Counted from the first letter of the stretch, positions 17,451 to 64,000 are shown. The stretch is 64,000 bases of DNA from Botryllus schlosseri (GCA_051294905.1 CM119383.1:21142001-21206000); one strand, 5' to 3'. The notes: a model not told the origin generated them from the sequence alone. A program made the numbers and translations.

Positions 17451-18607
17451 ATGGCATCTAACAGCTGGAACCCTTTCTTGCCGACGAAGAAAACCACTCC
17501 GAGTAATGGCGAGGCAAAATCGTTCGTGAACTACAACTATCAGTTTCCTAAGGACTTCTTGCGTCCGTATGGAGCACCGTCAGACGTGTTCGATTTTTCC
17601 GATCAAACGATTTAAAAACGCCTGAAACCGTTTTCATGCGGGTGGCTCAACCGACCGGGTTATGCATTATCGGAATTCGCGGCAACACTTATAAAGTGTC
17701 GAAACGTGACAATGGAATCGGAGATGCTGAACGAAAGTTTGTCAAGATATCTGGAAGTCCAAAATAGACGAACTGTGCAAACAGTTGGATGTATTTTGGA
17801 ACGAAGACGAGAACCCGAATCGTCGTCGGGACATGAAGGAAAACGAATGCATCGCAAGAATAAAAACAATAACATCGAATTCTGAATCAAAGCGATGCCG
17901 ACGGACTGTTCAAAGACATCGTGCATTCGCGTGCAAGGACGGCCAACGCAATGTACTCAACGGCCATCCACACGAGGATGGCAATGTGGGCACTGAGCTA
18001 TTCGGGCGTCGTAGCGCAAATGTCCACTCCAACGATGAATAACGTCGAATTACGATCGAATCCGACCTTGGACGCGCTCTCTAAGTCACCTTATGCTGAT
18101 TACTTGGTGAAAAGTACTTATTCTAAAAGCGGCGTATCCATCGCGAAGAAAAATCTATTGGAAAAACTTAACCCGCGTTCTGCGGAAGGGGAAGGTACTT
18201 CTGCGGAACTATCTGCTATACCAACGCAAGCCGGCACTTCGTCGATTGGTGAAGAAACGGGCAGTTCAAGTGTTCCAGTCCAAGCACCAAGTACGTCAAC
18301 GCTTCCCGAATTTGACGACGACGATCTGGACCAGTACTTGCTAGCTATCGATCCAAGAGTTGTAACCGGAGAAAACATCGTGACTTCGCCGCCGAAACCT
18401 GCAAAGAAGATCAGCAAGAGTGGCAAGCTGCGACCGTCGGCGTATGACGATGAGGTCCGTGAGATAAATGAAGCAGCAGCCGGCATGGCATGTCCTATCA
18501 GATCGGGGAAAGCACCGGCCACAGCGAGCTGCTCTGTGACCGGCCACAGAATGTTATTTGGATTTCACAGCTTTTCTGAACCTAAAAGAGTATTTTCCAC
18601 ATATTAA
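17451..18607 (+). pseudogene. Family A pseudogene (copy A2)
   Basis: YNYQFPKDFLRPYG, then an in-frame TAA, then GWLNRPGYALSEFAATL; frameshifted; low-complexity tail. Confidence 0.75.
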
Positions 18608-18708
18608 TGATTCTTTGATACCCTGATTGTTTCGATCGGATACTGTGATTACGGTATTTAGTAATGGAAACCAGAAAACAGGCTAAATGACCGCAGGCTG
18701 AGGCCAAC

Positions 18709-19125
18709 ATGGATGATGGAAGTGTTCAAGAGGAGCCAGCTGAAGTGAAGGAGGAACCTATGTTACCGCTGGCCACACCTGTCGTTGCACCGCCCGTTGC
18801 GGCAGTTATACGCACTGAGTCACATATTTGTCGTCAGAACGCCATGAAGTTCGACGGAGAAGCGATTAACTTCCGTCGTCTCCAAATCAGGTTTGTAGTT
18901 GAGAATGTTACCGACGCAGACAGTATCGTCAGTATGTGAAAAGTTCAGTGAAGCATAGCTCCAAATTATACCCATGCGACAGTGAATTTTTCCATATTGA
19001 GTCACGTATTTCTCATGGGAAGATCGTCGAGTTCGGCGCAATAAATAACGATAGCGTAGAAGCATATCGTGTTGGATCGCGTAAAGTACACGATGCGAGC
19101 AACCAGTAAGCCTGCAATAGCATAT
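18709..19125 (+). pseudogene. Degraded orphan family D segment
   Basis: KFDGEAINFRRLQIR and KLYPCDSEFFHIESRISHGKIVEFGAIN align with translations at ~25770-25920, ~47450-47640 and ~58045-58150, with apparent synonymous changes. Confidence 0.4.
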
Positions 19126-19129
19126 AGAT

Positions 19130-19260
19130 CGATGACGATATAGATGTGGACGTAAGAATTGGAAACCGCAAAATGAAGACAACACTAATTTTACGAAATG
19201 GATTCTATGGGCGTGGCGTCGTAAGGTGTGACTACGAAACGGTTTACGGGCCTGGGCTGT
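19130..19260 (+). pseudogene. Family B N-terminal fragment
   Basis: DIDVDVRIGNRKMKTTLILRNGFYGRGVVRCDYE matches KVDVDLTIGRRKVEATLILRSGLYGRGVIRCDYE at 35080. Confidence 0.75.
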
Positions 19261-19819
19261 CAAAGAAGGGTGGATCGTTGGTCTGGGCCCACAGACGGCG
19301 GAGGAAATCACAAAAAAACCTTTTATTTTCCTCATTAGGCTTCCTAGAGCTAAGTGTGTTTGGGGGGGGGGGTGATCCATCGTCGATAACTCTGGTTTTA
19401 CGTGTTCGACAAGCCCCATCTCTACGTGTTGTAGACATGTAAAACTTCGTTTAATTCTCGCTTCAGTTCAGTCAGTTTGTAGAAGTCAGGGTGGAGTTTG
19501 TAGAAGTCAGGGTGGAGGAGTTTACGGTATTACAGTTGAAGGCCAGACTATATCTGTGTCTGTCGTTTTTTACGTCGCGTAAGAGCGACTCGGGCTTAGT
19601 TTTGTCGGGTACCTGGTTCGAATCCGGGTGTCCCCTGTTTCAAGTCATTGGTTTCTCGCTCTGTCCGGCCAGAAGTCAGATATTAGACCAGGGTTAGCTT
19701 TGTAGAGTCGCACGAGTCAAAATGAGTCCGCTCGCTCGTTTACCTATTAGCATAGCTTATTGGTATGAAGTTTCTAGTACCATACTTCATTTTCATTTTC
19801 GTTTTTTTCAGAAATCATA

Positions 19820-20425
19820 ATGGAGATCATAGCTACTTCGTAAGACTGTAAAATTGACTTAACCATATACATTCGGAACCAAATGATCTCAGCGAAATTG
19901 CTAATGCAGCAAGGATTCTTCGCCCGTGGGGTAGTAGATTCTGATTGTAAAGCGAGAACGATACCACCGGACAGGCTTAATTTCAAAGTGATGGCAAAAT
20001 CCAACGTGCACTTGCCGCTGTCGTTGGCTGCAATGCCCAACGACTTCCATTCTGCACGCACCCACACGTTGATACAGGAGTATGGAAATGTCTTCATTAC
20101 GACCCATTTCATTGGACGTTCAACGGTTGCGGGGCTCATTATCAGTGACGATTTTAAAGCTGAACTACTCGTTTTTTATGACGTAATGTTTGCCATCACA
20201 TCATCTGGACTGCTGCGGTCCGTGCGTTTGGCGGTCGAAAGCCCGCCGTACGACGACGCCGTGAGACCGACGGACCGCAGCGGTCGGCGACCGTTGCTGT
20301 TCGTTCCTAACCACGTGTCGCAGCCGCAACCGCCCCAGCCTTCCTGAGCGGTGGTCCGCGAGCTGGTCGGTATGGCGGCAAGGCCGAAACGTACAATTCG
20401 GGCTCCGGTCCGAATGGACCTTTAG
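19820..20425 (+). pseudogene. Family B pseudogene
   Basis: ATG at 19820, TAA at codon 8 and TGA at 20345. Read-through ends AARPKRTIRAPVRMDL*, like the intact paralogs. Confidence 0.85.
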
Positions 20426-20519
20426 TTTCACTAACTCTGTCTTAGGGGTAGGAGCTAGATAGGAGTCGGATAGGTCGCTGGGTATGGCGAAAGATAGGTG
20501 CTGCGGACTGGCCGGCAGA

Positions 20520-21035
20520 TTTTCGCGCATCGCGCGGACGGTTTTTTCGCTTGTGCGCGGATTTCATTGAAAACGCGCCAGGGGGGTGGGGGGTGGTAGC
20601 GCGGTGCGTTTTTGCGCATCGCGCGGACGGTTTTTTCGCTTGTGCGCGGATTTCATTGAAAACGCGCCAGGGGGTGGGGGTGGTAGCGCGGTGCGTTTTT
20701 GCGCATCGCGCGGACGGTTTTTTCGCTTGTGCGCATATTTCATTGAAAACGCGCCAGGGGTGGGGGGTGGTAGCGCGGTGCGTTTTTGCGCATCGCGCGG
20801 ACGGTTTTTTCGCTTGTGCGCGGATTTCATTGAAAACGCGCCAGGGGGTGGGGGTGGTAGCGCGGTGCGTTTTCTCGCATCGCGCGGACGGTTTTTTCGG
20901 TTTTGCGCGGCTTTCATTGAAAACGCGCCAGCGGGGTGGGGGGTGGCAGCGCGGTGCGTTTTCGCGCATCGCGTGGACGGTGTTTTCGATTGTGCGTTGT
21001 GCGCGGGTTTCACTGAAAACGCGCCAGGGGGTGGC
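20520..21035. repeat. 87-89 bp GC/G-rich tandem repeat, ~6 copies
   Basis: gcatcgc recurs at 20527, 20616, 20703, 20790, 20877 and 20966. The unit contains the tttcattgaaa palindrome and G-runs. Confidence 0.9.
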
Positions 21036-21100
21036 CAGTCGTAACGCAATTCGTTTCTAGTACCGTACTTCATTTTCCTCATCGTATTTATCAGAAAAAA

Positions 21101-21664
21101 ATGGAAGTAATCACTAGTGTTTACGACGATTGCGTTGACTTCACAATCTATATCGGGTCACGACTTGTCTCTGCTAAATTGATAATGAAGGAGGGCTTCT
21201 TCGCCCGTGGCGTCGTCGAAAGCGATGTAGAAGCTAAATCGATCCCGACCGGCCGTCTCATTTTTTCAATCAAGAATGAAGATCCGTTTCACAGAAACGT
21301 AAGAGCGCCGCCTGCCTTGGCACCAATGGCCAATGATTTTCACTCGGAACGGGGGACAGATGTTCTAATGGAACAAGGCCAGGTCTTCGTTTCTACGCAT
21401 TTGAACGGGCGATCCAAAATTGCCGGAATAATGATTAGTCGTGACTACAAGGCAAAAATGCTTATTTTCATGGACGAAATGATGGCCATTTCGCGATCGG
21501 GGCTGGTCCATCCGGTAACTCTGGTCGTCGATCGCTCGGCGGATGCTGATATCATCCGACCGACGGATCGCAGCGGTCGTCGACCTGTCTTTTTTCAACC
21601 AAATCATGGACCGCAGGCGTTACCGGCACCGCCCGCTGGACCGGTGGTCCGGACCCCTTGCTGA
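21101..21664 (+). CDS. Family B protein, C-terminus truncated by a junction to a family A fragment
   Basis: Colinear with 33194, 61226 and 62756 (FTIY...L.MKEGFFARGVV...DFHS...GRS.IAG...DRSGRRPV). Confidence 0.75.
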   Translation: MEVITSVYDDCVDFTIYIGSRLVSAKLIMKEGFFARGVVESDVEAKSIPTGRLIFSIKNEDPFHRNVRAPPALAPMANDFHSERGTDVLMEQGQVFVSTHLNGRSKIAGIMISRDYKAKMLIFMDEMMAISRSGLVHPVTLVVDRSADADIIRPTDRSGRRPVFFQPNHGPQALPAPPAGPVVRTPC

Positions 21665-21972
21665 TGTTCACGAACGGATGAACAACCTGGATCAAGTACT
21701 TGACTACGAGAATTCACCGTTTTTTCAACGGTACATCGAAGTTATGATCGAAGCCGGGAATGCATTATATCTGAACGGCATTCACCTTTTGGCACTGAGT
21801 TTCCTACTGCGAAACAAAAACAAGTGGACAGGTAAGCTTAGGGCCCATATCGACAACGAAGAGTTTAAAGCAAATGCAACCACTGAAAACCTTGCAAAAA
21901 ACTAGTATCGTGGATATGTCATTCGTAAAGGCATGAATGACACAACGCATGTGTCTCCTGAACACTCCGCAC

Positions 21973-24699: not shown

Positions 24700-25930
24700 A
24701 ATCACTTTTCGGAAAACAACGAAGGTAAGCTTATTTCCATATAATCGTGCGTTTCCGTGCAGTCGAGATTCCGTTCATTTCACTTGAATCCTGGTCTGGC
24801 GATGTGGCCATAAGGATATCCATGTCGTATATTCTTTGGGCTGTCATTTCTCGTTGCATGTTTCTTCTTTATCGTGACCTTTGTCATTAGTTTTCGAACG
24901 TTGAATAATGCAATTTTATCATTCGTTGTCCGTATTAATAGCGCTCATTTTCTTTCCAGAAAAAAACTAAATATGTCATTTAATTACGATAAAGTTGCGT
25001 GTCACTTACGACCAATGCAGTATCCACAGCGATGCGGAAGCTTCCCCAACGTTGAACTGTCGAAAACTAGCAACGACAAACTCGTATCACACGATCCTAA
25101 CCAAAGGTAAGTCAGATATTTTCTTTTCGATTCGCTGTATTACCTACTTTTATTTGTTTCCATTTCGCAGGTTTTCACGACGTCCGCTGATGGCGGCGAA
25201 CTTTGATCGTGACGAAGAGGGAAAAAAATATTTTCTCGTCTTCAAAAGTGAGACGGTTCGTATGCTAGTTCCCTTATTCGATTGGCAAGTATCGTTATTC
25301 TGATGGTACGTCTATTTCCAGATAATCGTGCGTTTCCGTGCAGAAGACCTCGTCAGAATTGCTGTTGAATAGTCCTTCGCATATTTTCATTCGAGTTCTC
25401 AAGTCAATTGTTCGTTTTTAATAGATCGTTTGCATTGTGGCCTTGTCTCTTGTGATTCTTTGTCTGGATGCGTCGAATTAGACTATAGTGTTGAGAAGGT
25501 AACAACGTTATCAGAAACTTACTGGCAGGATAACCTCATAATATAGCTACCGTGCCGTAAAGTTTTGCATATCGTGTTACAGAGTTATAGTTTGGGTTAC
25601 AGTTACTAACATGATTTCAATACGACAACTCAGAGGTCATATAGCTTCGTGCAATAGCGATATGGTCGACGAAGTTATACGTATTGATTCACCAAAAAGT
25701 CCGAAGTTTACAATTCAGGTGTGACGTGAATAGTATCGCCAATATGTGGAAAATTCAGCGCAGCATAGTTCAAATTACACCCATGCGACGCCGAATTTTT
25801 CCATATTGAGACACGCATTTCTCATGGGAAGTTCGTCGAGTTCGGCGCGATCAATAAAATTACACTAGGAGTAGCGTATCGTGTCTTGCGCGTAAACTAC
25901 GCGATGCGATCGACCTGTAAGTCTTCCATG
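24700..25930 (+). pseudogene. Putative degraded multi-exon gene leading into family D exon
   Basis: GT-AG candidates 24725-24762, 25107-25170 and 25306-25343; KLHPCDAEFFHIETRISHGKFVEFGAINK at ~25770-25860. Confidence 0.3.
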
Positions 25931-28085
25931 GGATGTAGTTCGACGATTGGGTGCCACAAACAGACATCCCATGCACCTCGGGCGGGCTGGGTGTGGTTGT
26001 GACGTCATAATGAGTCAAATCCGTTATTACATGTAACTATATAGTAACTGCAGTGTTAGATCTACTTATACGAGTTTCATAGACGTGTCTCTTTCTTGTA
26101 GCTATAATACTATTATAACTTTTCTGACACCCTATAGTTGCAGACATGCTAGACACTTCATTTTGGTGTCATTAGAAAGGTTGCAAAAAAAGCTCAATAC
26201 GTTTTTTTTTAAGTCTCTACTTCAAGTAGTTTTCGAGTAGTGGCTTTGTAAAGTAGTTTCAACGTAGTTTCAACGTCGTGATCGCTACTGACTTCATATT
26301 TGTATCGTACAATACTCGTCGCAAGACAATTTTTCAGTCCAAGTATCAAGTAGATTTGTCAAGTAGTTTTCGAGAAGTGGCAGTGTAAAGTAGTTTCAAC
26401 ATAGTTTCAACGTCGTGAGTGCTATCGAGTTGATTTTTGTATCGTTTAATACTCGTCGCAAGACCAATCTTCAGTCCGAGTATCAAGTAATTTTGTCAAG
26501 TAACAAACATTTTATAGTACTTTTAATGTTTCGGAAGTGCTTTTAGCGATGTTCTGACGGCGCTAGAGAGTTGATTTTTTCACGGATGATTGCTCTCGGC
26601 ATGAACGATCTATAGTCAAAATTTCAAGTGGATTGGTATACGTGGGAAGAAGTTACGAAAGTCTTCGATGTTTCCCAGATATGTTTCCCGGATATGTATC
26701 CGGTTTTCATATCCGGATCCGCTTTCAAACGAAAGCCCTATTCAATGTGCTTACGCTGAAAAAGATTTCATAGCTCTACGTATTGTACTTCTCCAGATAT
26801 GCACGTTCAAGTAGTTTCAACACTACTTTTCAAGTACTACTTTTCAGCGGTTCATGCAAAATACTTCATATTTCGTCAAAAAATTCTATACAAGTCAAGA
26901 GTACTGCCCACGTTATTGTAGTTCATTCACTTTAGCACAGGATTTTATATATTTTCATTTTCATCGAAAAAACTACTTTTCAAGTACCACTCTTCAGCGG
27001 TTTATGCAAATTACTTCATATTTCGTCAAAAAATTCTATACAAGTCAAGAGTACTGCCCACGTTATTGTAGTTCATTCACTTTAGCACAGGATTTTATAT
27101 TTATTTATTTTCATTAAAAAAACTACTTTTTGAAGTACCACTTTCCTACGGTTCGGTGTAATCACTTAATTTTTGTCTAGGAGTGATCTACGGCCTCTCC
27201 TGAAGCAAGCGATGGCAAAAATTCCGTTCCCCGCACTATTTCAAGACGGTCTGCAAAGGAATTATCCCGATCCGACAAAAGGTTCGGCCTCCAGAGCCGG
27301 GCAAAGGTCCGTTTTGGGCGGGCTTTAACCGGACTTTTCTCGCCTCCGGGTGGTCGGATTCGGATAATTTTTTTGTCGGATGCAGCTCGAAGAGACGCTT
27401 CCAACGAGGGGTCCCGTTTTGGTCTGACCCTTACAGGGGCCGCTCAAATCGTCGAAACGTCATATCTCGGCCCCTGAAGCGCGTAGAGCTACGTCTATAG
27501 TCGGAATCAACTCCTGATGCCATATCAAGGGTGAAAATTTTCGTCCTAGGGTTGTTCTCCTTCGTATATAAAGACGATTGGTGAAAAAATTTTTGCGATC
27601 CGACAAAAAATAAGCCCTCCAGGTTCGGTCAAAGTTTCGATTTTCATCCTCTTTAACCGGACTTTTCTCAGCTCCGGGTGGTCGCATCCAGATATTGTTT
27701 TTTTCGTCGGATGCGGCTCAAAGAGACGCTTCGAACGAGGGGTCACTTGAGGGTCTCACCCCACCACGAGATGAGATAATCCCCAAAACGTCCTATATTG
27801 TCAAGCATAGGCGATGTCCGAAAAACGCTCAAGTCCCAAATTCCTATCTCTTAACATAGGAATTACTCCCGTCGTTTACCCGCCAGCTCGGACGAAAAAG
27901 TCCAGATTTCGAATTTTTTTTTCCAATTTTTTCCCCCCCAAAATTTTTTTTTCCCAAAAAAAATCAACTCCCCCCCCCCACACGAAGTATGGAGTGTCTC
28001 AGACCAATTCCAGGCATTCTACCATCTACAGCATGGGCCCTGGACTTGGGTTTGCTCCGGGGTCGGTGACCTACTGTGTCCGAGA
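25720..28085. repeat. Module non-coding block, copy 1 (paralogs 47520-49790 and 58040-61180)
   Basis: Long shared stretches, e.g. gggatgtagttcgacgattgggtgccacaaacagacatcccatgcacctcgggcgggctggg, and the terminal ccccccc-cgaagt-tggagtg-ct segment. Confidence 0.85.
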
Positions 28086-28089
28086 GTGA

Positions 28090-28110
28090 AGTATTTGGTT
28101 GTTATAAGGT
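28090..28110 (+). other. 5'-truncated SL-like exon with GT donor
   Basis: AGTATTTGGTTGTTATAAG|GTTCGC, identical to 49882-49906. Followed by gtaagtactaacggcttgtttcag (TACTAAC plus acceptor). Confidence 0.7.
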
Positions 28111-28629
28111 TCGCGTAAGTACTAACGGCTTGTTTCAGATTTAAAGACCCGTCGATTGAGCCGCTGCGGCCATTGTAGCTAAACTACCGTAAAACTTATT
28201 TATATTGTACCGTACTACTGCCGTACCTAGGATAGAACCTCTTCTTAGGCTACTTCTACTTTACCTCTTTTCTCTCTCTTTGCCGGCGACGAACTTCGAG
28301 TCTCCTTTAGACTCAACTCTCTTCAGGTCTTGACTCTCCCTCTCGAATCAAGACTTGTCGAGCTCTCCCTCTCCTAGTCTTGGCTCTCTCTCTCGAGTCA
28401 AGTCTAGGAGAGTCTGACTTTACTCTCGCGCCTCTCTCTGGAGACGTCGAGAGAGTGCCTTCTTAACCTCGAGTGAACTCGCCTGACGTCAGCCGTCTGG
28501 CGAGTATCGTTCGAGCTTACCGTGCCTCTTGAGCGCGCAGCCTACGCCCATCGAGACGTTGGTATCGATTTCGCGAGCGTTTGGAAACGCCTTGCTTTGC
28601 GTTCGATAGCTAGACAGAAAGACAGTAAG

Positions 28630-29925
28630 ATGGCTTACGCAAACGCATTAACAGGACAGGGAAATCATCAAATTACATACGGGAATAGGCCTAGATCATT
28701 GGACATAACAACACCACTTGACTGCCAGACAACAGAAGTGATAGATGCCATCATCACTCACCCTGCACTCAAGGAATACAGTGAACCCATCGCTTCTATC
28801 TTCCAAATCGGCAGAACAACGTTCAACCAATCTTTTCACACACACCCACAGACAGAGACGATTCGCGAAGAGTTCGTCGAGAAAACAATCACGGGAATCA
28901 ACCTCGCAAACGGTACGATGTACGTTAGAAAGCCCAGGCCACCGGCGGCACAAGTCAACATCAGAGCCGTGCCAACGGAGGTGGAAGAACGCGAAATCAG
29001 AAACAAAATCGCACAATACAACTGCGGCACGGTCCGCGATATCAAACTGATATATCACAGGGGCACTAACCTACAAAATGGGTACAGGCAAATCAGTATT
29101 GAAGATTACATACCGGGAAGACTCCCGTCTTTTATTTACCTAGGGCAAGCACCCTGCAAAGTATATACACCTAACGACGAAGGAAACGAGACGTGTTTGA
29201 AGTGCCTGCAGAGAGGACACACGGCAAGTCAATGTCCAAACACAACAGTGTGCTTCCTTTGCAAACAAACAGGGCATCGTCGACACGAGTGTCCAAACAA
29301 AAAAGAACAACAAACAGCTACAAACCAGAGGAGAATACTGAAGGTTGATGAACACATTACACAAACAGACATGGAAGTTATAGATGAACCTGAGCCTGAA
29401 CAAAACAACGAAGAACAAAGCCCAGCTTCTGCATCAAGCGAGGCAGAGGCTGAGGAGATAGAGAATGAGGAAACAGAAGAAGAGGAAGAGAATGAGGAAA
29501 CAGAAGAAGAGGAAGAAAAAGATGACAATGAAGGAGGAGAGGAAGAACCATTAGTAGACCTCTTTAACCTACACGAAAACTCACAAACACCAAGTGAACT
29601 CGACGAAACGATCAGACCAGGATCACAACAAGAAAGTGTAGCCGGAGATCTACAGATAGACACAAGTGAAGACGAAAACCAAACACAATTAGATAATGGC
29701 CAAGGCAGCAAAAAGCCAAAACACCTTTTAAACAAAGACCGAAAGAGCCAAACGACGATCCTTCGACAAAGGTTCGAGAGGAGCCATTTTACGGAACAGG
29801 AATTCTTCAGTGCAGCACAACACTCACCAAACAAAAGAGGCGTTGAAACACGTAGTCCAACCTTGCCAACGTCGAGCAAAAGCAGACGTAAGCTGGCAAA
29901 GCCCGATACGGACGACGAAAAATAG
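28630..29925 (+). CDS. LINE A ORF1 (gag-like, two zinc knuckles, acidic tail)
   Basis: CLKCLQRGHTASQC and CFLCKQTGHRRHEC; open frame. Confidence 0.85.
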   Translation: MAYANALTGQGNHQITYGNRPRSLDITTPLDCQTTEVIDAIITHPALKEYSEPIASIFQIGRTTFNQSFHTHPQTETIREEFVEKTITGINLANGTMYVRKPRPPAAQVNIRAVPTEVEEREIRNKIAQYNCGTVRDIKLIYHRGTNLQNGYRQISIEDYIPGRLPSFIYLGQAPCKVYTPNDEGNETCLKCLQRGHTASQCPNTTVCFLCKQTGHRRHECPNKKEQQTATNQRRILKVDEHITQTDMEVIDEPEPEQNNEEQSPASASSEAEAEEIENEETEEEEENEETEEEEEKDDNEGGEEEPLVDLFNLHENSQTPSELDETIRPGSQQESVAGDLQIDTSEDENQTQLDNGQGSKKPKHLLNKDRKSQTTILRQRFERSHFTEQEFFSAAQHSPNKRGVETRSPTLPTSSKSRRKLAKPDTDDEK

Positions 29926-29962
29926 AAAACCGAAATAGCAACCCAGCCCTCTCCGCTATTCA

Positions 29963-49852: not shown

Positions 49853-49875
49853 TGATTTGACTGTTGAAGTGGAAG

Positions 49876-49902
49876 GATTGGAGTATTTGGTTGTTATAAG
49901 GT
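49876..49902 (+). other. Full-length SL-like exon with GT donor
   Basis: GATTGGAGTATTTGGTTGTTATAAG|GTTCGC; second partial copy GAGTGTTTGGTTGTTATAAG|GC at 50180-50201. Confidence 0.75.
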
Positions 49903-51789: not shown

Positions 51790-52035
51790 AAGGATTGTCA
51801 AATATACCCCCAGGAGACGAGGCCTTCCAAATCCAGATTTTCAAACATGTAGAACAAAGTCCTTTACCAGCAGAACAAAGAATAAAAGACAGCCCGAGGA
51901 TAAAAAGAGTATATCATAGCAGCCCTGAGGAAAAAAGCGACAAAAATAAAAAAAATAAAGAAAATAAACGTCAAAACACTCGAAGAACAAAAGAAGGAAA
52001 GCAAATGGAAAACCCTATTATCTTTTATCGTTCAA

Positions 52036-54687
52036 ATGGAAGGCCACACAACCAATCCAGCCTCTCAGAAGAAAATCTACGACGCAAAAGGGCTTCAATG
52101 TACCCTGATATCGATAAATGTTAACGGCCTAAATCGAAAATGGGAAACATTCAAAATATTTATAAAAGAATCTAAAGCAGACATCTACTGCATTCACGTA
52201 GTACATAGAATGCAAAAACAGAAAATTGCAAACTGGGCAAATCAAAACTCGTTCACATACTATAAAAACTTCGATTCGGAAGCCTACCAAGGAAAGGGAA
52301 AACATTACCTAGGGACCGTCATTCTTGTAAAAAAAAACTTGGCAGAGAAATACACCATCCAGCACAAGATTATAATCGCTGACCGCGCCCAGGAACTCCA
52401 ACTAGACAGAGAGGGAGAATCCATACGCGTAATAAACATCTATGCACCAACTACGGCAACACGCGAACAAAATGAATTCTGCCAAGAACTTAAAGATCAC
52501 ATGGACAAGAGAAATGACACTACCATAGTAGCTGGAGACTTCAACATGGTCACGGAAAAGATAGACAGTGAGAAGCAAGCTGCATTCAGAATGACGAAGG
52601 GGGCGGAAACGTGGAAGAGCTTGATGAAGCAAATCTCGTTACTAGACATTTATAGATGGCGAAAACCATACACCAAGACCTTTTCCAATATAAACAACCT
52701 CAACTCAAGACGCATAGATAGAATCTACGTGTCAAAAACCCTAGCAACAATGGTGACGATGGCAGAATATAAAACAACCTGCATATCAAACCATCTATAT
52801 GCAATCATGAAAATAAAGCCCAAATCGCCACAAAAATGGGGAAGAGGAACATGGAGAAATAACATCTCTCATCTCCAAAACGGCAAATACAGAGCAACAA
52901 TAGAAAACTTGTACACCGAGTTTGATATGGAAAAAACAAACTACGCAAGTATAGCTGAATGGTGGGACAGCTTCAAAAAGAAGGTCAAAAAATTCTCTCT
53001 CTTTCGGAATCGAAGAAAAAAGAAAACAAAACCAAAAACAAACAGCTCTTGAAAACAAACTACAATCACCTTCCATAACATCCGAAGAAAGGGAAAAAAC
53101 AATCCAAGAGCTGAAAGAGCTAGAGAAAAAACGACTCGACGCAATCATGAAGTTCGAATACAGAGAGCAACTGGAGAAAGGAGAAAAACCTACGCACCAG
53201 TTCTACGAACATCTCAAAGAGAAAAAGCTGAGAAAAACAATCACACGCTTGAAAGATAGTACCGGAAATACAACGGCAGACAAAGAAAAAATAATAAACA
53301 CAATACATGGCTTCTATACAGACCTTTGGAATGACGAACAGACCGGAGACCCAAACCTACAAAGAAACCTGATTGAACTACTAACAAAAAAAATACCACC
53401 TGAAAACAGAATACTACATGACCTCCCAATAACCGAATTAGAAATACAAGATGCTCTAAAAGCACAGGCAAACAATCGATCACCCGGACCGGATGGAATT
53501 TCGATCGAATTCTACAAAACTTTCTTTCAAATCCTCAAGCACGACCTTCTCCAAATATATAATAACGCTCTCCTATTCGGAAGTACAGCAAACACATGGA
53601 ACGAGTCGAAAGTCACTTTGATCTTCAAAAAAGGGGACCCTGAAGACCTAAAAAACTGGAGGCCAATATCCCTAGCCGACGCTGACTATAAGCTGCTCAC
53701 AAAAATAATCGCCAACAGAATTCGAAAAGACCTAGGCGAAGTTATCACTCCCACGCAAAAGTGCGCGATAGAAGGGAGACAAATTACGGACGCGCTGCAA
53801 AACATCCAAGCAGCGATAAATCACAGCAATGACAAGAAATCGCCACTAGTAATAACAAGCATCGACCAAGAAAAAGCATTCGACCTTGTCCCGCACAAAT
53901 ACCTCTGCGGCGTCATAAAAAAGCTCAATTTCGGCAAAAAAATGACAAAATTAATCGAGAACATCTACGAAAGAGCTGAAAGCAGAGTCGACATCAACGG
54001 TACCCAGACCAACCAAATACCGCTAAGAGAGGACTCCGCCAAGGTTGCCCCTTGAGCATGAGTCTATACGCCCTCTCCGCCGAACCAATGACCCAGAGGT
54101 TCCTACAGAATAACAAAATCAAAGGAATAAAACTGGCAAACCTGCAGCTCAAATTGCAGCAATATGCCGACGATTGGACGATATTAACCAAAGACCTGGA
54201 ATCAATAGAATATGCCCTTGAAGAAATGAAATTCTTAGAACAAGCAACAGGACAAAAGATAAACCAAAAGAAAACCGAAATACTAAACTTGAACAACCCA
54301 AAAGACCCAATCAGAAGTGAAAAATACAAGGAAAACATCAAGAACACGATCAAGATACTCGGCCAATATTACGGAGAAGACCAGAGTAAACTAACATGGA
54401 ACACTGTCATCTCAAAAATAGAGAAAGCCACCCGATTTAACAACCAACGGAACCTGACGTGGTACGGAAAGAAAATGATCATAAACGCAATGATTTCGCC
54501 GAGAATAACGTACCACGCAAGAGTAACACCACCAACTCCAGAAGTCATTGCGAAAATGACAAGAATAACATTTAACTTCCTCTGGCACCCTGAAAAGATA
54601 GAGAAGATCGCGCGACACAAGCTCATAAGAGGAATAAAGAACGGCGGACTAGACATCCTGCACCGGGCAGACACCGAACAAATCTAA
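52036..54687 (+). pseudogene. LINE B ORF2 (APE + RT), frameshifted at ~53050 and ~54050
   Basis: ISINVNGLN, VAGDFN, RRIDRIY, NWRPISLADADYK, DQEKAFD and QYADD. Confidence 0.9.
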
Positions 54688-54689
54688 AA

Positions 54690-55929
54690 CGGAAATATTA
54701 TCCTTCAAACAAAATATTATAAAGAACGAAGACTACAAAAACTTGATAAAACAATCCACAGAAATATTGGGACAAAAATTCGGCCAAAACTATAAAAATG
54801 AGACTTGGGAAAAAAGAATAAACCAGATCAGAAAAATCACCATGGCATATAGACATAGAAATCTTACGTGGTTTGGCAAGGCAACAATATTAAATAGCCT
54901 AGCAACAACTAAGATCCTATACAACGCAAGGATCATTCATATGCCAAAGAAGGCAATAAAAAAGATAAATAGCATGTTCTTCCGATTTATCTGGAACCCC
55001 AAAAAATAGAACCAATAAGTCGGAGGAAAATGATATGTAGCGACGCTACGAAGAAAATAAACATACCCTGCATCCAAAGCGGAGTAGAAACTGGGTTGGC
55101 TGAAAAATTCAAAATTCTGAAAAATATCAGCCAACCCAAAGAATTTTGGCACCATGAAGCCATGTACACCCTGGGCACCAGACCAAGGGAAGTGAACCCA
55201 CAGTTATATAATAACTCTTCTCCACATAGATTAAACACAACTAAGGAATGGAGAGAAATTTTGAAAGTAGTAAACAAATTAGATTGGACAGAACAGAGAT
55301 GGGCTGAAGCAACTCACAAAGACATCTACACAGAAATCAAAAAACAGAAAGATATACCAACAGACGTACTCCTCGAAAGTAGAGCCTGGACGAAATTAGA
55401 CAAAGTATCGGAGATTAGGGGTTACAAAACCCACTTAACAAATGAGGAAAGAGTTATCAATATAAGAACAGCGTCGAATGGGTACTTCCTCGGAGAAGAC
55501 AGGAGAAGGCTGAACATCCTAAACATTGGGTCACAGCCGATCGAACCCATAAAATGTAGATTTTGTGGTGAACAGAAAGACAACATAGAACACCTACTGA
55601 TTCATTGTAAACTTGCAAGGAACCTGTATGGTAATTTTACAAGAATAATAAAATCAAAAGTAATGAACAAAGATTCGATTCTGCACAATCAAAATCTACA
55701 AGAATCAGAAGATTGGGCAATAATAAGCCTAATAAAAAAAGAAATAATCAAGAATAAATTGGCACTAGATAAAAATAAGCAGAGTTGGATTAATGCCGAT
55801 GAAGCAATTAGGGATTTGACAAAAAAGACAGCAAGAAAGTTGATGAGAAGAATCAGCACGCTTAATAATTCTACGGAGGACCAGGCTCTCAGAAATGAAC
55901 TCGCGTTCATATACGAAGAGAACCTGTAA
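54690..55929 (+). mobile_element. 3' ORF2 fragment of a second L1/Tx1 family
   Basis: ILGQKFG...RNLTWFGKATILNSL...FFRFIWNPKKIE repeats, with low identity, ILGQYYG...RNLTWYGKKMIINAM...TFNFLWHPEKIE. Ends with CRFC...IEHLLIHC. Confidence 0.75.
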
Positions 55930-57267: not shown

Positions 57268-57560
57268 GGGTGGGGGGTGGTAGCGCGGTGCGTTTACGCG
57301 CATCGCGCGGACGTATTTGTCGGTTGTGCGCGGCTTTCATTGAAAACGCGCCAGCAGGGTGGGGGGTGGAAGCGCGGTGCGTTTTTGCGCATCCGCGGCT
57401 GGCTGGTTTGTTCGGTTGTGCGCGGCTTTCATTGAAAACGCGCCAGCTGGGTGGGGGGTGCTAGCGCGGTGCGTTTTCGCGCATCGTGCGGACGGAATTG
57501 TCGCTCGTGCGCGGCTTTCATTGAAAACGCGCCAGCTGGAGGGGGGGTCGTAGCGCGGCG
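57268..57560. repeat. 87-bp G-rich tandem repeat, ~3 copies (single copy at ~32990-33075)
   Basis: Same unit as 20520-21035 (gcggctttcattgaaaacgcgcca...ggggtgg-agcgcggtgcgttt). Confidence 0.85.
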
Positions 57561-57634: not shown

Positions 57635-58045
57635 ATGGAAGTCATTTCTAACATTTATGACGAATGTATCGAGATTACTTATACTTATTTCATTCAGTCA
57701 AGGATGATAAGAGCCAAACTGGTCATGAAAGAGGGCTTTTTCGCTAGAGGACTCGTCCAAACTGATGTCGAGGCGATAAAGGTTTCGCCGGATCGCTTGA
57801 TTTTGCAAAAAGCCGCAATCGCCGTTCCACAGGAACGTGCGGCTGCCTGACAACTTTGCTTCGTTGCCGGGCGACTTTAGTTCGGCGCGAAACAAAGTAA
57901 TTGTGTTGCAAGAAGGACATGTCTTCGTATCAACAATGTGGAATGGGAGGTCCACCATTGCGGGATTCATGGTGGCAGACGATTTCCGGGCTGAATTTCT
58001 GGTGTTTCACGATCAGCAGAAAAAAATAAGCAGAAATGGCCATAT
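57635..58045 (+). pseudogene. Family B pseudogene, frameshifted and 3'-truncated by a junction to block copy 3
   Basis: MEVISNIYDECIE...LVMKEGFFARG and GHVFVSTMWNGRSTIAGFMV. Confidence 0.8.
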
Positions 58046-61000
58046 TGAGACCCGCATTTCTCATGGGAAGTTCGTCGACTTCGGTGCGATCGATAAAATT
58101 ATACTTGGAGTAGCGTATCGTGTCTTAGTAGTAAACTACGCGATGCGATCGAACTGAAAGTCTGCCATGGGATGTAGTTCGACGATTGGGTGCCACAAAC
58201 AGACATCCCATGCACCTCGGGCGGGCTGGGAGCGGTTGTTACGTCATAATGAGTGAAATCCGTTATTACATGTAACTGTATAGTGGCTACAGGGTTGTAT
58301 CTACTTATACGAGTTTCATTACACGTGTCTCTTTCTTGTAGCTATAATATTATTATAACTTTTCTGACACCCTATAGTTGCAGACATGCTAGACACTTCA
58401 TTTTGGTGTCATTGGAAAGGTTGCAAAAAAATCTCCATCCGTTTTTTTTTTCAAGTCTCTACTTCAAGTAGTTTTGGAGTAGTGGCTTTGTAAAGTAGTT
58501 TCAACGTAGTTTCAACATCGTGATAGCTACTGCCTTCATATTTGTATCGTACAATAGTCGTTGCAAGACAATTTTTCAGTCCAAGTATCAAGTAGATTTG
58601 TCAAGTAGTTTTTGAGTAGTGGCTTTGTAAAGTAGTTTTATGATAGTTTCAACGCCGTGAGTGCTATCGAATTGATTTTTGTATCGTTCAATACTTGTGG
58701 CAAGCCCAATCTTCAGTTCAAGTATCAAGTAATTTTGTCAAGTAACAAACATTTTATAGTATTTTTAATGTTTCGGGAATGCTTTTTGCCATGTTGTGGT
58801 AGCGCTAGAGAGTTGATTTTTCCACGGATGGATACCGTTGGCAAGACCTATCTTCAATAAAAATTTCAAGTGGATCGGACCACGTGGAGAAAAGTTACAC
58901 GTAAATAATATTTTTGACTAGGTTCTGGTGGTCGTAAAGACTCGATATCTTCAATTCTGAAACGTCGCGTCAGGACCTATCTTCAGTGAAAATTTCAAGT
59001 GGATCGGATCACGTGGAAAAAAGTTACGAATTTCGCGTTTTTGACCATGTTCCCGTGGTGCTAGAGAGTTGATTTTCTCAATTCTGAATGCTCTCGTCAA
59101 GACCTATTCTCAGTACAAATTCCAAGTGAATTGGACCACGTGGAAAAAAGTTACGAATTTCGCGTTTTTGACCATGTTTCCGTGGTGCTAGAGAGTTGAT
59201 TTTCTCAATTCTGAATGCTCTCGTCAAGACCTATCTTCAGTACAAATTCCAAGTGAATTGGACCACGTGGAAAAAAGTTACGAATTTCGCGTTTTTGACC
59301 ATGTTCCCGTGCTGCTAGAGAGTTGATTTTCTCAATTCTGAATGCTCTCGTCAAGACCTATTCTCAGTACAAATTCCAAGTGAATTGGACCACGTGGAAA
59401 AAAGTTACGAATTTCGCGTTTTTGACCATGTTCCCGTGCTGCTAGAGTTGATTTTCTCAATTCTGAATGCTCTCGTCAAGACCTATTCTCAGTACAAATT
59501 CCAAGTGAATTGGACCACGTGAAAAAAAGTTACGAATTTCGCGTTTTTGACCATGTTCCCGTGGTGTTAGAGAGTTGATTTTCTCAATTCTGAATGCTCT
59601 CGTCAAGACCTATCTTCAGTACAAATTTCAAGTGAATTGGACCACGTGGAAAAAAGTTACGAATTTCGCGTTTTTGACCATGTTCCCGTGCTGCTAGAGA
59701 GTTGATTTTCTCAATTCTGAATGCTCTCGTCAAGACCTATTCTCAGTACAAATTCCAAGTGAATTGGACCACGTGGAAAAAAGTTACGAATTTCGCGTTT
59801 TTGACCATGTTCCCGTGCTGCTAGAGAGTTGATTTTCTCAATTCTGAATGCTCTCGTCAAGACCTATTCTCAGTACAAATTCCAAGTGAATTGGACCACG
59901 TGAAAAAAGTTACGAATTTCGCGTTTTTGACCATGTTCCCGTGGTGTTAGAGAGTTGATTTTCTCAATTCTGAATGCTCTCGTCAAGACCTATCTTCAGT
60001 ACAAATTTCAAGTGAATTGGACCACGTGGAAAAAAGTTACGAATTTCGCGTTTTTGACCATGTTCCCGTGCTGCTAGAGAGTTGATTTTCTCAATTCTGA
60101 ATGCTCTCGTCAAGACCTATTGTCAGTACAAATTCCAAGTGAATTGGACCACGTGGAAAAAAGTTACGAATTTCGCGTTTTTGACCATGTTCCCGTGGTG
60201 CTAGAGAGTTGATTTTCTCAATTCTGAATGCTCTCGTCAAGACCTATTTTCAGTACAAATTCCAAGTGAATTGGACCACGTGGAAAAAAGTTACGAATTT
60301 CGCGTTTTTGACCATGTTCCCGTGGTGCTAGAGAGTTGATTTTCTCAATTCTGAATGCTCTCGTCAAGAGCTATCTTCAGTAAAAATTTCAAGTTGATTG
60401 GACAAGTAATAAAAAAGTAAAGCCTTTTCTAATTATTTTCGAAGCTATTTAACCATGTTCTGGTTGTGGTTGGGACTTCATTTTTTATTTTCTGAGAAGG
60501 GCGGGAAAAAGCAATTAATCTATGTGAATTTCAAGTCAATCGGAGCACGAAATCTAATTTTTTTCAGGAGCCCTTATTTTCAAAAAAACAGTTTGTGGTG
60601 GCGCTAGAGAGTTACTTTTTTTTTCTGGAAAGAGCTGGGAAAGGCGATTAATCTATGTAAATTTCAAGTAAATCGGCCAACGTTTACTATTTTTTCAAGT
60701 ACGAAATGTGTTCGAAATAAAAAACTTCAATGTTTTCTGTGATTTCTCTCTCAGTTTTAACGGTATCGTCTCGGGGAAGTCGGCGTTCGAAAGATGTGTG
60801 TAAGAAGAACCCAGAACTTTTCGAATTTTCTCGATAGCTATCACGGTCTCGAAATGACAGCCATTTCAAAATGACAGTTTTTCCGGACCAAAAAGTCGAC
60901 TTTTTCGAATTTTCTTTAGCCAAAAAATTTCGAAAAATTTTCATTTTTTTCCCCAAAAAAAAATTTTTTTTCCCAAAAAATCTGAAATTTTTGACCCCCC

Positions 61001-61185
61001 CCCAGCCGAAGTTTGGAGTGCCTAGGACCAACTCCAGCCATTTTAGCCATTCTACCATGCTACAGTATAGGACCTGGACTTATGTGTACCCAAGTCGTTT
61101 TCGAGTCACGGTCGGATCAGTGAACTTGAGTGTCCGGGAATGAACCGAGTGGGAGTGAACCGTTCTAGAACTTTCTCGGAATATG
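58040..61185. repeat. Module non-coding block, copy 3, ending in an HSE (gTTCtaGAActTTCt, 61162-61176)
   Basis: Colinear with copies 1 and 2. Confidence 0.85.
58760..60420. repeat. 127-bp tandem satellite, ~12-13 highly similar units
   Basis: acgtg anchor at 58882, 59011, 59138, 59265, 59392, 59517, 59644, 59771, 59898, 60024, 60151 and 60278. Confidence 0.95.
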
Positions 61186-61225
61186 GCGTGACATCCTGTT
61201 CGTTTTCGTCTTTTCAGATATCATT

Positions 61226-61843
61226 ATGGAAACTTACTGCTATTCCTTCGACCGAAAGATTGAATTGACCATTTACTTAACCAATCGAGTGGTCACCGTA
61301 AATTTTCTGCTCAAGAAAAACTTTCACGCGCGCGGTGTTGTCTTGACGGATTCCAAAGTCACGTTGAACGAGGATGGCAGGCTAATTTATAGGAATATGC
61401 AAAAGTCGCCATTTTATCGGAACATTTATCTTCCATCTACTTTGCCCGTCATATGTGACGACTTTCATTCTGCTCGTCAGACGAATATAACCGAGCATAA
61501 CCGCAATGTCATCCTGTGCACAATGTTTCAGGGGCGTTGCACAGTTGCTGCCGTTATGCTACGTCAGCACTTTAAAGCGGAAACCGCCATTTTATATGAC
61601 GTGCAACACGCCCTTATGAAATGCGGTTTGAAGCGATATGTCCCTCTCGGCATTGAACGCCCGCCATATGATGATGAAGTACCAGGGACGGTGAATGGAA
61701 ACCAGCTCCCAGTATTGTTGGTCCCTAATCCTGTACTGCAGGCGTTGCCGGCACCGCCAGCTGGAGCGGTGATCCGCACCCTAGACGGCGCGGCGGAAAG
61801 GCCGAGGCGCGAGAGCCGGGCCCCGGACCGCTTGAATCTTTGA
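61226..61843 (+). CDS. Family B protein, intact (205 aa)
   Basis: Open ORF colinear with paralogs; ends RPRRESRAPDRLNL*. Confidence 0.8.
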   Translation: METYCYSFDRKIELTIYLTNRVVTVNFLLKKNFHARGVVLTDSKVTLNEDGRLIYRNMQKSPFYRNIYLPSTLPVICDDFHSARQTNITEHNRNVILCTMFQGRCTVAAVMLRQHFKAETAILYDVQHALMKCGLKRYVPLGIERPPYDDEVPGTVNGNQLPVLLVPNPVLQALPAPPAGAVIRTLDGAAERPRRESRAPDRLNL

Positions 61844-62755
61844 TTTACAAATATTATGCCGAATAATTTCGTTTTCGATGCTTTGAAGTTGATGTCACGC
61901 CAATTTTTATGTATTTTTATGAACGCTTTTACTATTATTCACTTTAGTTAAGTTAAGTTAAGTTAATTGCATTTTTTTGGCCACCTTTGCTACTATCATG
62001 TATTGCCTTTAGTGTCGTCTTTAATTTATGTTGGCCAGTTGGTTCCGATATTCGTCATTGTTTTATGTTATTATCAATACCATTTTATCGCTTTTATCTT
62101 TCTGTAGGTCTTATCAACTGTGCATCGCATTTCTTTTAATCGCTTCTTTGTTTTTCAGATCATATTATGAAAGCGTTAGCGTACACGTGTTCTGAAACAC
62201 TAGTTAACCACTGATATGCGCCTTGAACAGAATGGGGCAGAAAAAGGTCGGTGTCAGCTCGTCGGAACACTGCGACGGTGTCAAGCCGGGATTTCAGTAT
62301 ATACGATTCTTCGTGAGAGAAGAAGTACTGTGTAACAGTACGTGAACTTTAGTGAGCATTGCGTTGTCGATCACGCCGTGCTTTCTAAAGCTTTATTTAC
62401 TGTTACATAATGTCACAATTCTAATATTAAATAGTTCTGTATAAATTGTTTGTGCTTACGAGGTCATGATACAGTGTCTTGTCTGTCTTGCATATGCAGT
62501 TCTGAGTTGTACGTGCAAGGTTTGGCAAAACACTGTTTCGTTACATGGGTTCCGGTGTAGGGAAACTTGCTGGTATGTGTGACTATCCACACTTCAAAGT
62601 GCATCAACCTGTTACCCAGGTTTATGTTCCGTGAAGTCAGCATAGTGATACGAAACATCGTAATTATCGTCGGACGTACTCGAATTAAAGTTGCGCATCA
62701 TGCGATCATTTACATAGCATACTGTATTTTCATATTCGGTTTTTCAGAATTAAAA

Positions 62756-63373
62756 ATGGAGCCTATTATCAGTTGCTATGATAACAATATCACTTTGACC
62801 ATCTATTTGCCGAACCGTATGGTGTCGGCAAATCTCTTAATGAAAGACGGTTACTTTGCGCGCTGGGTGATCAACAGTGACACGAAAGTTGTTAAAAACA
62901 CAGAAGGAGAGCTGAAGCTGAAGGTCCTGCCGGAATGCCCTTTCCACGCCAACGTATCCTACCCGCCAAATCTTCCATATTTGGCGGATGACTTTCATTC
63001 GCCGCGGCAGCAGACATCGGTTCAACACCAGGGAAATCTGTTTCTGTCAACGATGTATCTTGGAAGGAAGACGGTCGTGGGATTGATTTTCCACGACGAG
63101 TTCCAAGTTTGCCATCATGTTTATCATGACACTAAACTTTTCCTCACGCCATCTGGGCTAAAAGAAAAAGTCAAGTTGGCCGAGGAACGGCAGCCTTTTG
63201 ATAAGCCTGTCATTCCAAGAGACCGCAGCGGACGTAGACCGGTTTTCTACGTCCCAAATCATGTAAGGAAGCCGCAACCGCGAAAGCCATCTGGTGCGGT
63301 GGTGCGCGTGCTAGAGGGTATGGCGGCAAGGCCGAGGAGATTCATAAGGGCGCCATTGCGGATGGACTTATAG
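62756..63373 (+). CDS. Family B protein, intact (205 aa)
   Basis: ATG at 62756 after a ttttcag acceptor; ends RPRRFIRAPLRMDL*. Confidence 0.8.
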   Translation: MEPIISCYDNNITLTIYLPNRMVSANLLMKDGYFARWVINSDTKVVKNTEGELKLKVLPECPFHANVSYPPNLPYLADDFHSPRQQTSVQHQGNLFLSTMYLGRKTVVGLIFHDEFQVCHHVYHDTKLFLTPSGLKEKVKLAEERQPFDKPVIPRDRSGRRPVFYVPNHVRKPQPRKPSGAVVRVLEGMAARPRRFIRAPLRMDL

Positions 63374-63663
63374 TTAATAAAATAACTTTACTTTCGTTTC
63401 ATATAGTTTCGTTTTTCTCTCGCTTTTTTAAGTATTTTGACATCCAATTGTATGCTATCGCTATTACGTTTTTTTCAACTGTGCTTTACATTAATCGCTT
63501 TACATTAATCGCATTAATCGCGTTTCATATAGTTTCGTTTTTCTCTCGCTTTTTTAAGTATTTTGACATCCAATTGTATGCTATCGCTATTACGTTTTTT
63601 TCAACTGTGCTTTACATTAATCGCATGTTTCTTTCCAGGTCTTATTATCATAGCGTTAGTGTA

Positions 63664-64000
63664 ATGGCTAAATCTAACTCTGCGGCCGGCGAAGGCTACT
63701 TCGAGCAGACTGTATATCGAATTGACGACTTGCAACATCCTGAGTTGGTTAAAGTCGAAACGAAGATTTTACCGATTCCTGCTCATTCTGAACCTGAACC
63801 CGAACCGGTTCCTGATCCAGAGGACCCAAATGCTTATCTCTTGATACCAGCCGACCTGAACCGCGAAGGTCGCAAAACGCTGATAAGTCCTGAGCAATAT
63901 ATGGCTTGGTATGAAGAAAGGTTTCCTGGTCAACAGGAGAAGGTCCAGAATGAAGGTGATCTTTTCGAAGGGTCGCCTGTACAAGCCTTTTCGGAATTTC
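63664..64000 (+). CDS. Family C protein, runs off window end
   Basis: MAKSNSAAGEGYFEQTVY...DPNAYLLIPADLNREGRKTLISPEQYMAWYEE. Confidence 0.75.
   Translation, partial: MAKSNSAAGEGYFEQTVYRIDDLQHPELVKVETKILPIPAHSEPEPEPVPDPEDPNAYLLIPADLNREGRKTLISPEQYMAWYEERFPGQQEKVQNEGDLFEGSPVQAFSEF

Follow-up and report, generated by a model that had tools for sequence, protein, structure and literature searches.

The analysed window, a 64-kb stretch of Botryllus schlosseri DNA without N runs (GCA_051294905.1 CM119383.1:21142001-21206000), contains genes of a family, here called A, whose homologues accompany the Rep-helicase in a clade of marine-animal Helitrons. This pair of Rep-helicase and A is the lasting result of the analysis, together with a lineage of A genes that lack a Rep-helicase and stand in a repeated cassette with two orphan families, B and C. 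The cassette array spans 47 kb and comprises three rearranged copies of one cassette of orphan genes, among which lie two decayed Rep-helicase genes and three unrelated long interspersed nuclear elements (LINEs); the remainder of the window is retroelement material. We consider there to be an even chance that the region is a transposon-rich island in which the cassettes form a recombining array, amplified locally and derived from Helitrons through A. The Rep-helicase and family-A genes of the window are as follows.

568-2076, plus strand: A1, an intact family-A gene of 502 amino acids (aa); A profile expect value (E) 4.5e-121
2364-5917, plus strand: Rep-helicase 1, a Helitron Rep-helicase of near full length, broken (2 frame changes, 0-1 stop)
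17409-18607, plus strand: A2, a diverged and broken A copy in four pieces of open reading frame (ORF), found by the profile and by tblastn with A homologues of other loci
21519-21905, plus strand: A3, an A fragment covering profile positions 126-206 only
38723-39664, plus strand: A4, an intact family-A gene of 313 aa; A profile E 2.5e-130
41236-42348, plus strand: A5, an N-terminally shortened A copy (profile positions 25-224), a local duplicate of A4
42856-46302, minus strand: Rep-helicase 2, a Helitron Rep-helicase of near full length, broken (2 frame changes, 1 stop)

Relatives of the Rep-helicases at 33-48% identity were found in Ciona, in Phallusia, in two NCBI assemblies and in many ENA and TARA marine assemblies. 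Nine related loci (L001-L009) from other assemblies and marine metagenomes were examined, which gives ten loci with the window. All eight loci with enough downstream sequence (L002-L009) have an A homologue immediately after the Rep-helicase, on the same strand and 22-704 bp away from it. The downstream gene was detected both by tblastn with the window proteins (E 1e-7 to 1e-16) and by profile search, which reached E values of 1e-30 to 1e-78 in the loci not used for the profile, L005-L009 having been left out of its building. In the reciprocal search, the A genes of the related loci matched back to A1, A2, A4 and A5. The Rep-helicase and A are the only genes common to all ten loci. Furthermore, their pairwise identities co-vary and yield the same groups (Spearman 0.57, for pairs that are not independent). 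At the level of sequence comparison, these results show family A to be a conserved second (accessory) gene of a marine-animal Helitron clade, co-evolving with the Rep-helicase, and therefore the cassette is Helitron-derived at least through A. No published description of such a second Helitron gene was found in a literature search that was not exhaustive. The initial annotation had tied a fixed set of families to the Rep-helicase and had proposed a search of other tunicate and marine genomes. The tie holds for A, which is the downstream gene of the related marine loci and co-varies with the Rep-helicase, and is not supported for B and C, both absent from all nine related loci.

The related loci also have an organization of their own. 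In L004 (1-20858), units of a Rep-helicase, an A gene and about 6 kb without conserved ORFs follow one another head to tail with a period of 10.9 kb, at 68-80% identity; L003 has a tandem period of about 15 kb, and in L001 (1-9300) 1.39-kb tandem repeats containing A fragments lie upstream of the Rep-helicase. The tails that follow A in L003 (211-4231, 14710-19458) and in L006 (11108-16852) are 85-97% identical, whereas the Rep-helicase DNA of these two loci is only 66% identical; either Rep-helicase lineages share tails, or the tails were homogenised. Because of the organization of L001, L003, L004 and L006, tandem arrays and mosaic identity are habits of the clade that carries the Rep-helicase and A. 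Its units are thus shown, as far as the assembled loci indicate, to lie often in 11-16-kb head-to-tail arrays. The Helitron locus of L006 is embedded between long 17-bp satellite arrays (1-3312 and 19090-19908). The ORFs in the tails of L006, L007 and L009 were considered as counterparts of B or C and rejected, as they are not conserved between loci.

Both Rep-helicases of the window match Helitron_like_N of Pfam, and both retain the HxH motif, the two tyrosines and the Walker A motif when aligned with their relatives. A Pif1-like helicase of superfamily 1B is fused C-terminally to the Rep, as matches to AAA_30, AAA_19 and PIF1 in both copies indicate. The type, which in the relatives has about 1200 aa, consists of an N-terminal zinc-finger-like region, an HUH Rep and a Pif1-like helicase of superfamily 1 (SF1); measured against these relatives, neither window copy has an uninterrupted frame. 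Pfam domain scans detected no endonuclease domain in either copy, and therefore these are not Helentrons. The two genes are only 48% identical to each other and therefore belong to two lineages. Family A had been described as a neighbour of both Rep-helicases. The adjacency is real, and the arrangement is not uniform: A1 ends 290 bp upstream of Rep-helicase 1 on the same strand, while A5 is convergent with Rep-helicase 2 on the opposite strand. Rep-helicase 2 has no A gene on its own strand, and the homology of the A5 unit to the A4 unit fades out just before it. Rep-helicase 1 and A1 have a similar guanine-plus-cytosine (GC) content (0.53-0.55 for both) and constitute a GC-rich unit 11.5 kb from the array. 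Retroelement debris separates Rep-helicase 1 from A2, which is found 11.5 kb downstream of it. It is possible that Rep-helicase 1 and A2 belong to one Helitron split by nested insertions, but this candidate was rejected as weak, A2 being far more decayed than Rep-helicase 1.

An invariant EW..RP..A.SE...T motif runs throughout the family A alignment. The protein is predicted to be helical, with low confidence (predicted local distance difference test, pLDDT, of 41 for the model), and has an acidic and basic tail with a lysine-rich C-terminus. In A1, which is GC-rich like Rep-helicase 1, a helical N-terminal domain is followed by a long basic and acidic tail. Sequence and profile searches of Pfam and PDB gave zero matches for family A. 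The C-terminal piece of A2 (17873-18604) had been set apart in the initial annotation as a family D; it matches the A profile at positions 151-240. Most A copies of the window stand without a Rep-helicase. A4 and A5 are 85% identical in DNA, with a ratio of non-synonymous to synonymous substitution rates (dN/dS) of 0.10 at a dS of 0.76. A1 and A4, on the other hand, are only 25% identical. Rep-helicase pairs at a similar 48% identity elsewhere have A partners at 36-53%, and for this reason the A4-type copies are a lineage of their own. A search with A4 returned two relatives only, at 53-63% identity and both from Logan sample SRR25569784 (P0001, P0002). These lie on 1.2-1.8-kb contigs with no Rep-helicase ORF called upstream, which is the expected look of solo A genes or transcripts. 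We take the A4-type genes to be probable trans-acting or co-opted accessory proteins.

The A4-type genes belong to the cassette, the other components of which are listed here.

18804-19135, plus strand: block fragment, the 5' part of the non-coding block
19128-19439, plus strand: B fragment, the N-terminal 40 or so residues of family B
19844-20347, plus strand: B1, a family-B copy without N-terminal start and with a shortened tail
20520-21034: 87-bp repeat, GC-rich, 5.8 copies; ends 67 bp upstream of the B2 start codon
21101-21664, plus strand: B2, a family-B gene of 187 aa, its C-terminal end cut short where the A fragment abuts
25603-28047, plus strand: block copy 1, with 137-bp and 150-bp tandem repeats
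32874-33088: 88-bp repeat remnant, upstream of B3
33194-33859, plus strand: B3, an intact family-B gene of 221 aa, the copy used for the structure model
35080-35763, plus strand: B4, an intact gene of 227 aa and the most diverged of family B; its 3' end enters a 93-bp tandem repeat
36920-37444, plus strand: C1, a diverged family-C gene of 174 aa
38037-38477, plus strand: C2, an intact family-C gene of 146 aa, 89% identical to C3 in nucleotides
47330-49788, plus strand: block copy 2, with 140-bp and 127-bp tandem repeats
57268-57558: 89-bp repeat, 3.2 copies; ends 77 bp upstream of the B5 start codon
57635-58040, plus strand: B5, a broken family-B copy that stops after about two thirds of the gene, at the start of block copy 3
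58040-61188, plus strand: block copy 3, in which the 127-bp repeat occurs 12 times; 38 bp separate it from the B6 start codon
61226-61843, plus strand: B6, an intact family-B gene of 205 aa
62756-63373, plus strand: B7, an intact family-B gene of 205 aa
63664-64000, plus strand: C3, a family-C gene that runs off the window end

The families were detected by self-BLASTN of the window, by all-versus-all BLASTP of its ORFs and by family hidden Markov models (HMMs) searched against its six frames, and A, B and C were recovered at these positions with E values of 1e-12 to 1e-130. Thus the repeated module claimed in the initial annotation is real. Every copy of A (five), B (eight copies or fragments) and C (three) lies on the plus strand, and none of the three families contains introns. 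The full cassette reads non-coding satellite block, 88-bp repeat, B, B, C, A, and a family-A gene closes each complete module. Module 1 consists of A2, a block piece, the B fragment, B1, the 87-bp repeat and B2, followed directly by the second half of an A gene (A3). Module 2 runs from block copy 1 (25603-28047) through a LINE, the 88-bp repeat remnant, B3, B4, C1 and C2 to A4 and A5. Module 3 runs from block copy 2 (47330-49788) through a LINE, the 89-bp repeat, the cut-off B5 and block copy 3 (58040-61188) to B6, B7, C3 and the window end. Modules 2 and 3 are collinear in DNA (block 80-90%, B-B spacer 73% over 810 bp, C 89% identity). The order block, LINE, 87-bp repeat, B, B, C that had been read at 25.7-38.5 and 47.5-64 kb is therefore borne out in its gene order and its collinear DNA, and A extends it; the LINEs drop out of it as independent insertions. 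Similarly, the scrambled third version at 17.4-24.5 kb has the layout described for it, its D piece being part of A. The block copies are 80-90% identical and carry tandem repeats of 127 bp and 137-140 bp. Tandem repeats of the related Helitron loci were considered as counterparts of the block and rejected as inconsistent between loci, and the notion of the block as a LINE 5' untranslated region with monomers was likewise dropped, since no LINE accompanies block copy 3 and those beside the other two copies are of different families.

Complete frames of about 190-230 codons persist in five B copies despite a nucleotide identity of only about 50%. In comparisons among the B copies, the proportion of synonymous differences (pS) is saturated at 0.63-0.88 against a proportion of non-synonymous differences (pN) of 0.19-0.55; dN/dS for C2 and C3 is 0.34. 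From these substitution patterns, B and C are evidently coding genes under purifying selection. Because such selection keeps them, B, C and the A4-type copies would act as proteins. The orphan families with intact, diverged members that had been noticed earlier are therefore real and selectively maintained. The co-oriented paralogues, intact ORFs and dN/dS below 1 are those of a tandem multigene family. The structure model of B3 predicts a ten-stranded all-beta domain at residues 1-145 (pLDDT about 80-90); the tail after residue 145 is disordered, basic and proline-rich, and conserved in sequence. Foldseek searches of PDB and BFVD with this model gave no match (best template modelling score, TM, below 0.25). 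No homologue of B was found among 5.8 billion proteins in a word-indexed search, nor with the B profile among 1.84 billion representatives, and the JGI metagenomes and IMG/VR gave zero matches. For family C there were zero matches in the JGI metagenomes, in IMG/VR and, with the profile, in PDB. Neither B nor C, like A, has a match in Pfam. A lone PDB sequence match, to a designed pentatricopeptide repeat protein, contained no matched stretch and was treated as spurious. Cargo traceable to host parent genes was not found for B in the protein databases, nor for B or C in the JGI metagenomes or IMG/VR. We take B and C to be lineage-specific genes, the carrier of which may be either an element or the host.

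The divergence along the array is uneven, and the spacers and a recurrent 190-bp element have to be considered together with the genes.

33860-34762, plus strand: B3-B4 spacer, conserved, 68-85% identical to 61844-62748
34555-34741, plus strand: 190-bp element copy 1, palindrome-bearing, near the end of the B3-B4 spacer, upstream of B4
37758-37944, plus strand: 190-bp element copy 2, palindrome-bearing, 93 bp upstream of the C2 start codon
61844-62748, plus strand: B6-B7 spacer, conserved, including the third copy of the 190-bp element
62534-62718, plus strand: 190-bp element copy 3, within the B6-B7 spacer, upstream of B7

The coding cores of B3 and B6 share 45-53% of their nucleotides, whereas the adjoining B tail and spacer share 68-85% (33698-34762 versus 61730-62748), a pattern of variable gene cores inside conserved frames. 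Over the array as a whole, divergence is a mosaic in which blocks are 80-90%, spacers 68-85%, C2 and C3 89% and B cores about 50% identical. As judged from these identities, a much greater likeness of non-coding than of selected coding parts is expected neither from whole-module transposition nor from a single simple duplication. Therefore, patchy gene conversion, or a later spread of block and spacer, must be added to either. The ends of an element were also sought. A strict scan of either strand of the window found no GC-rich hairpin with CTRRT, such ends being hard to fix without more copies. No hairpins were found at the junctions beside the A and Rep-helicase genes, and inverted-repeat scans, a weak test, did not find asymmetric terminal inverted repeats of the Helitron2/Helentron type. 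No module has a Rep-helicase in the expected place. Compared with the relatives, in which A directly follows the Rep-helicase, the window has A1 upstream of Rep-helicase 1, A2 at 11.5 kb downstream behind the debris, and no same-strand A for Rep-helicase 2. The initial annotation had suggested a giant Helitron-like element of about 20 kb or more. Against this stand the missing ends, the two Rep-helicases that are both broken and of two lineages, the opposite strand of Rep-helicase 2, the absence of B and C from the related loci, and the mosaic divergence. One giant autonomous Helitron is thus a reading of the array that the ends, the state of the Rep-helicases and the divergence do not support.

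We hypothesize that the array arose when an A-bearing unit lacking the Rep-helicase became joined to the orphan genes B and C. The whole segment would then have been multiplied in place, by unequal crossing-over or by the formation of rolling-circle concatemers. Later deletions may have reshaped the array, as at the junctions of B2 with A3 and of B5 with block copy 3, and patchy gene conversion would keep blocks, spacers and gene ends alike while the B cores stay far apart. The LINEs would have inserted independently, at the block's A/T-rich 3' edge. The two Rep-helicases would be separate, younger and now broken copies of two Helitron lineages: the first may form, with A1, the GC-rich unit at the left end of the window, and the second may have been inserted, or inverted, into the duplicated A4/A5 unit.

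Several observations weigh against this account of a locally amplified array. A1 lies upstream of Rep-helicase 1, whereas the relatives have A downstream; A1 could be the end of a preceding tandem unit lying outside the window. No unit boundary is definable, so that local duplication and tandem rolling-circle products are indistinguishable, and gene conversion enters the account through the mosaic identity pattern, from which it may be inferred. Moreover, the order and strand of B, C and A are kept three times, all three families are intron-less, and B, A and the Rep-helicases share a composition (GC about 0.5; ratio of observed to expected CpG, CpG o/e, about 1.2-1.4) from which the LINEs differ. 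Finally, no recognisable host gene is present anywhere in the 64 kb.

These observations lead to the first of the alternatives, in which block, B, B, C and A form the body of a large Helitron family that is autonomous with the Rep-helicase and non-autonomous without it, B and C being its own genes or long-kept cargo and the modules either separate or concatemeric products. In its favour, A is a genuine Helitron gene that closes each module, gene order and strand are fixed, B, A and the Rep-helicases have a like composition, and the genes are intron-less and under selection. The relatives, too, form 11-16-kb tandem units with long tails after A. A reversed Rep-helicase is known in Helitron2, as are Rep-less Helitrons that long keep one accessory ORF (PMC3627910). 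However, B and C are absent from the nine related loci and from the databases searched, and the tails of the relatives hold no conserved ORFs. Terminal hairpins, TC and CTRR ends and asymmetric terminal repeats were not found in the scans, the place expected for the Rep-helicase is empty in every module, and identity is far higher in the non-coding parts than in the B genes, a difference not predicted by transposition of whole units. In addition, whole-gene capture by Helitrons is exceptionally rare (PMC6431247). We therefore keep this explanation as a tentative one, doubtful on the whole. It is unlikely, in our estimation, that the cassette is the body of a rolling-circle lineage with its own families A, B and C under element-level selection, where A would be shared across marine animals, B and C would be fast-evolving and lineage-specific, and propagation would occur as tandem units in which variable gene cores alternate with conserved, hairpin-bearing spacers.

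The Helitrons might also be coincidental insertions near a plain host gene cluster, a lineage-specific tandem family composed of B, C and domesticated A4-type genes. In favour of such a family are the deep divergence of copies that keep intact ORFs, with a dN/dS far below 1, and the co-oriented tandem layout with its signs of gene conversion. The 190-bp element before B4, B7 and C2 resembles a common promoter region, the A4-type homologues stand on short Logan contigs with no Rep-helicase ORF called upstream, and A4 is more diverged from A1 than the Rep-helicase pair predicts. On the other hand, each of the three modules has A copies interspersed among B and C, and the decayed A2 is what a transposon relic would be expected to look like. 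No homologue of B or C occurs in the other genomes or transcriptomes searched, including ascidians in the protein databases, and the window contains neither introns nor another host gene. A host cluster thus appears rather improbable, and less so only than a viral origin. The array is not an endogenous rolling-circle virus: an endogenised virus-like replicon, proposed in the initial annotation and taken here with B or C as structural proteins, could appeal to an HUH-class Rep together with orphan genes and to the predicted all-beta domain and basic tail of B, but is highly improbable, for the Rep is of the Helitron type with a Pif1-like SF1 helicase and not the small Rep with superfamily 3 helicase of circular single-stranded DNA (ssDNA) viruses, neither a capsid fold nor another viral fold matches the B model (TM below 0.25), searches of the IMG/VR viral metagenomes gave nothing for A, B or C, and no known ssDNA virus genome that encodes a Rep comes near the region in size.

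The usual description of Helitrons is of single-gene elements that acquire decaying gene fragments. The clade described here resembles Helitrons with an accessory gene: its Rep-helicase, about 1200 aa long with an HUH motif, two tyrosines and a Pif1-like helicase, has a conserved, co-evolving second gene downstream on the same strand. The known partner genes are RPA-like, OTU, endonuclease and Fanzor genes (PMC6431247, PMC3627910); the second gene here differs in being family A, predicted to be helical with a basic tail and showing no sign of an RPA-like, OTU or endonuclease identity. The Fanzor1-bearing Helitron2 elements CRe-1 to CRe-3 of Chlamydomonas (PMC3627910) are similar in their Rep-less units with a long-kept accessory ORF and in the variable orientation of the Rep-helicase, but the ends of those elements are defined by asymmetric terminal inverted repeats and two hairpins, features not found here, and the ORFs of the cassette are unrelated to Fanzor. 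Tandem Helitron arrays and satellites borne by Helitrons or Helentrons (PMC11934779, PMC7492417, PMC4067079) share the head-to-tail units and the internal repeats of about 90-140 bp; the published tandem arrays are non-coding, whereas the unit repeated here carries three selectively maintained gene families. Gene-capturing Helitrons of maize and fungi (up to 39 kb; PMC6431247) are comparable in their large size and in the several unrelated coding pieces beside the Helitron genes, although those pieces are usually decaying fragments of identifiable host genes, while B and C are complete, have no detectable parent and are under purifying selection. A Helitron clade of animals with a second co-evolving gene that matches no described family is a target for asking what rolling-circle transposition needs, and the Rep-less A copies under strong selection point to a trans-acting or co-opted use. 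If B and C are borne by the element, it would be a rare rolling-circle transposon with a multi-gene complement; if they are host genes, the locus would show a transposon gene drawn into a young host gene family.

The retroelements of the window were also annotated.

8898-17352: retroelement debris between Rep-helicase 1 and A2, with a DUF7041 gag-like ORF, an RNase H (minus strand) and a LINE reverse transcriptase (RT) with zf-RVT (plus strand, 14927-17352)
28477-32161, plus strand: LINE 1, with a zf-CCHC ORF1 and a degraded ORF2
50737-55929, plus strand: LINE 2, with a zf-CCHC ORF1 and with endonuclease, RT and zf-RVT in several ORF pieces

All three LINEs (14.9-17.35, 28.5-32.2 and 50.7-55.9 kb) are on the plus strand. 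The protein identity of LINE 1 and LINE 2 is only 33-37% with long ORFs kept, and they are therefore independent insertions and not ancestral parts of the module. They sit in the same orientation at the palindromic, A/T-rich 3' edge of the block (28047-28477, 49788-50737; compare 60911-61188), at positions that differ by about 100 bp when measured from the block, and the third LINE ends just before A2. This edge looks like an insertion hot spot, rather than the LINE being a shared part of the module. Within the debris, nested GC-rich inverted repeats (11951-12037; 23-nt arms, 91% complementary) surround GGCCGGCC and adjoin the minus-strand RNase H ORF.

CpG o/e is 1.22 for the whole window, 1.2-1.5 for A, B, the Rep-helicases, blocks and spacers, and 0.8-1.0 for the LINEs and C. 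Scans of the window for Rfam RNAs and tRNAs were empty. The 190-bp element contains an imperfect palindrome of about 70 nt and lies 38-340 bp upstream of the B4, C2 and B7 start codons; a weak further copy is present upstream of C1 (36745-36830). In most copies its predicted hairpin is no more stable than in shuffled controls. The element may represent either part of a common promoter or a small mobile element. The 93-bp (31-codon) tandem repeat at 35623-36093, with 5 copies at 97% identity, begins within the 3' end of B4. The 3' coding end of B3 contains an inverted repeat of 16 bp (33755-33795), perfect, GC-rich and with a 9-nt loop, and related GC-rich inverted repeats occur in the matching part of B1 and B6. 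Between B7 and C3 there is a 126-bp direct duplication of 100% identity (63395-63624), a very recent event, whereas the array is otherwise old.

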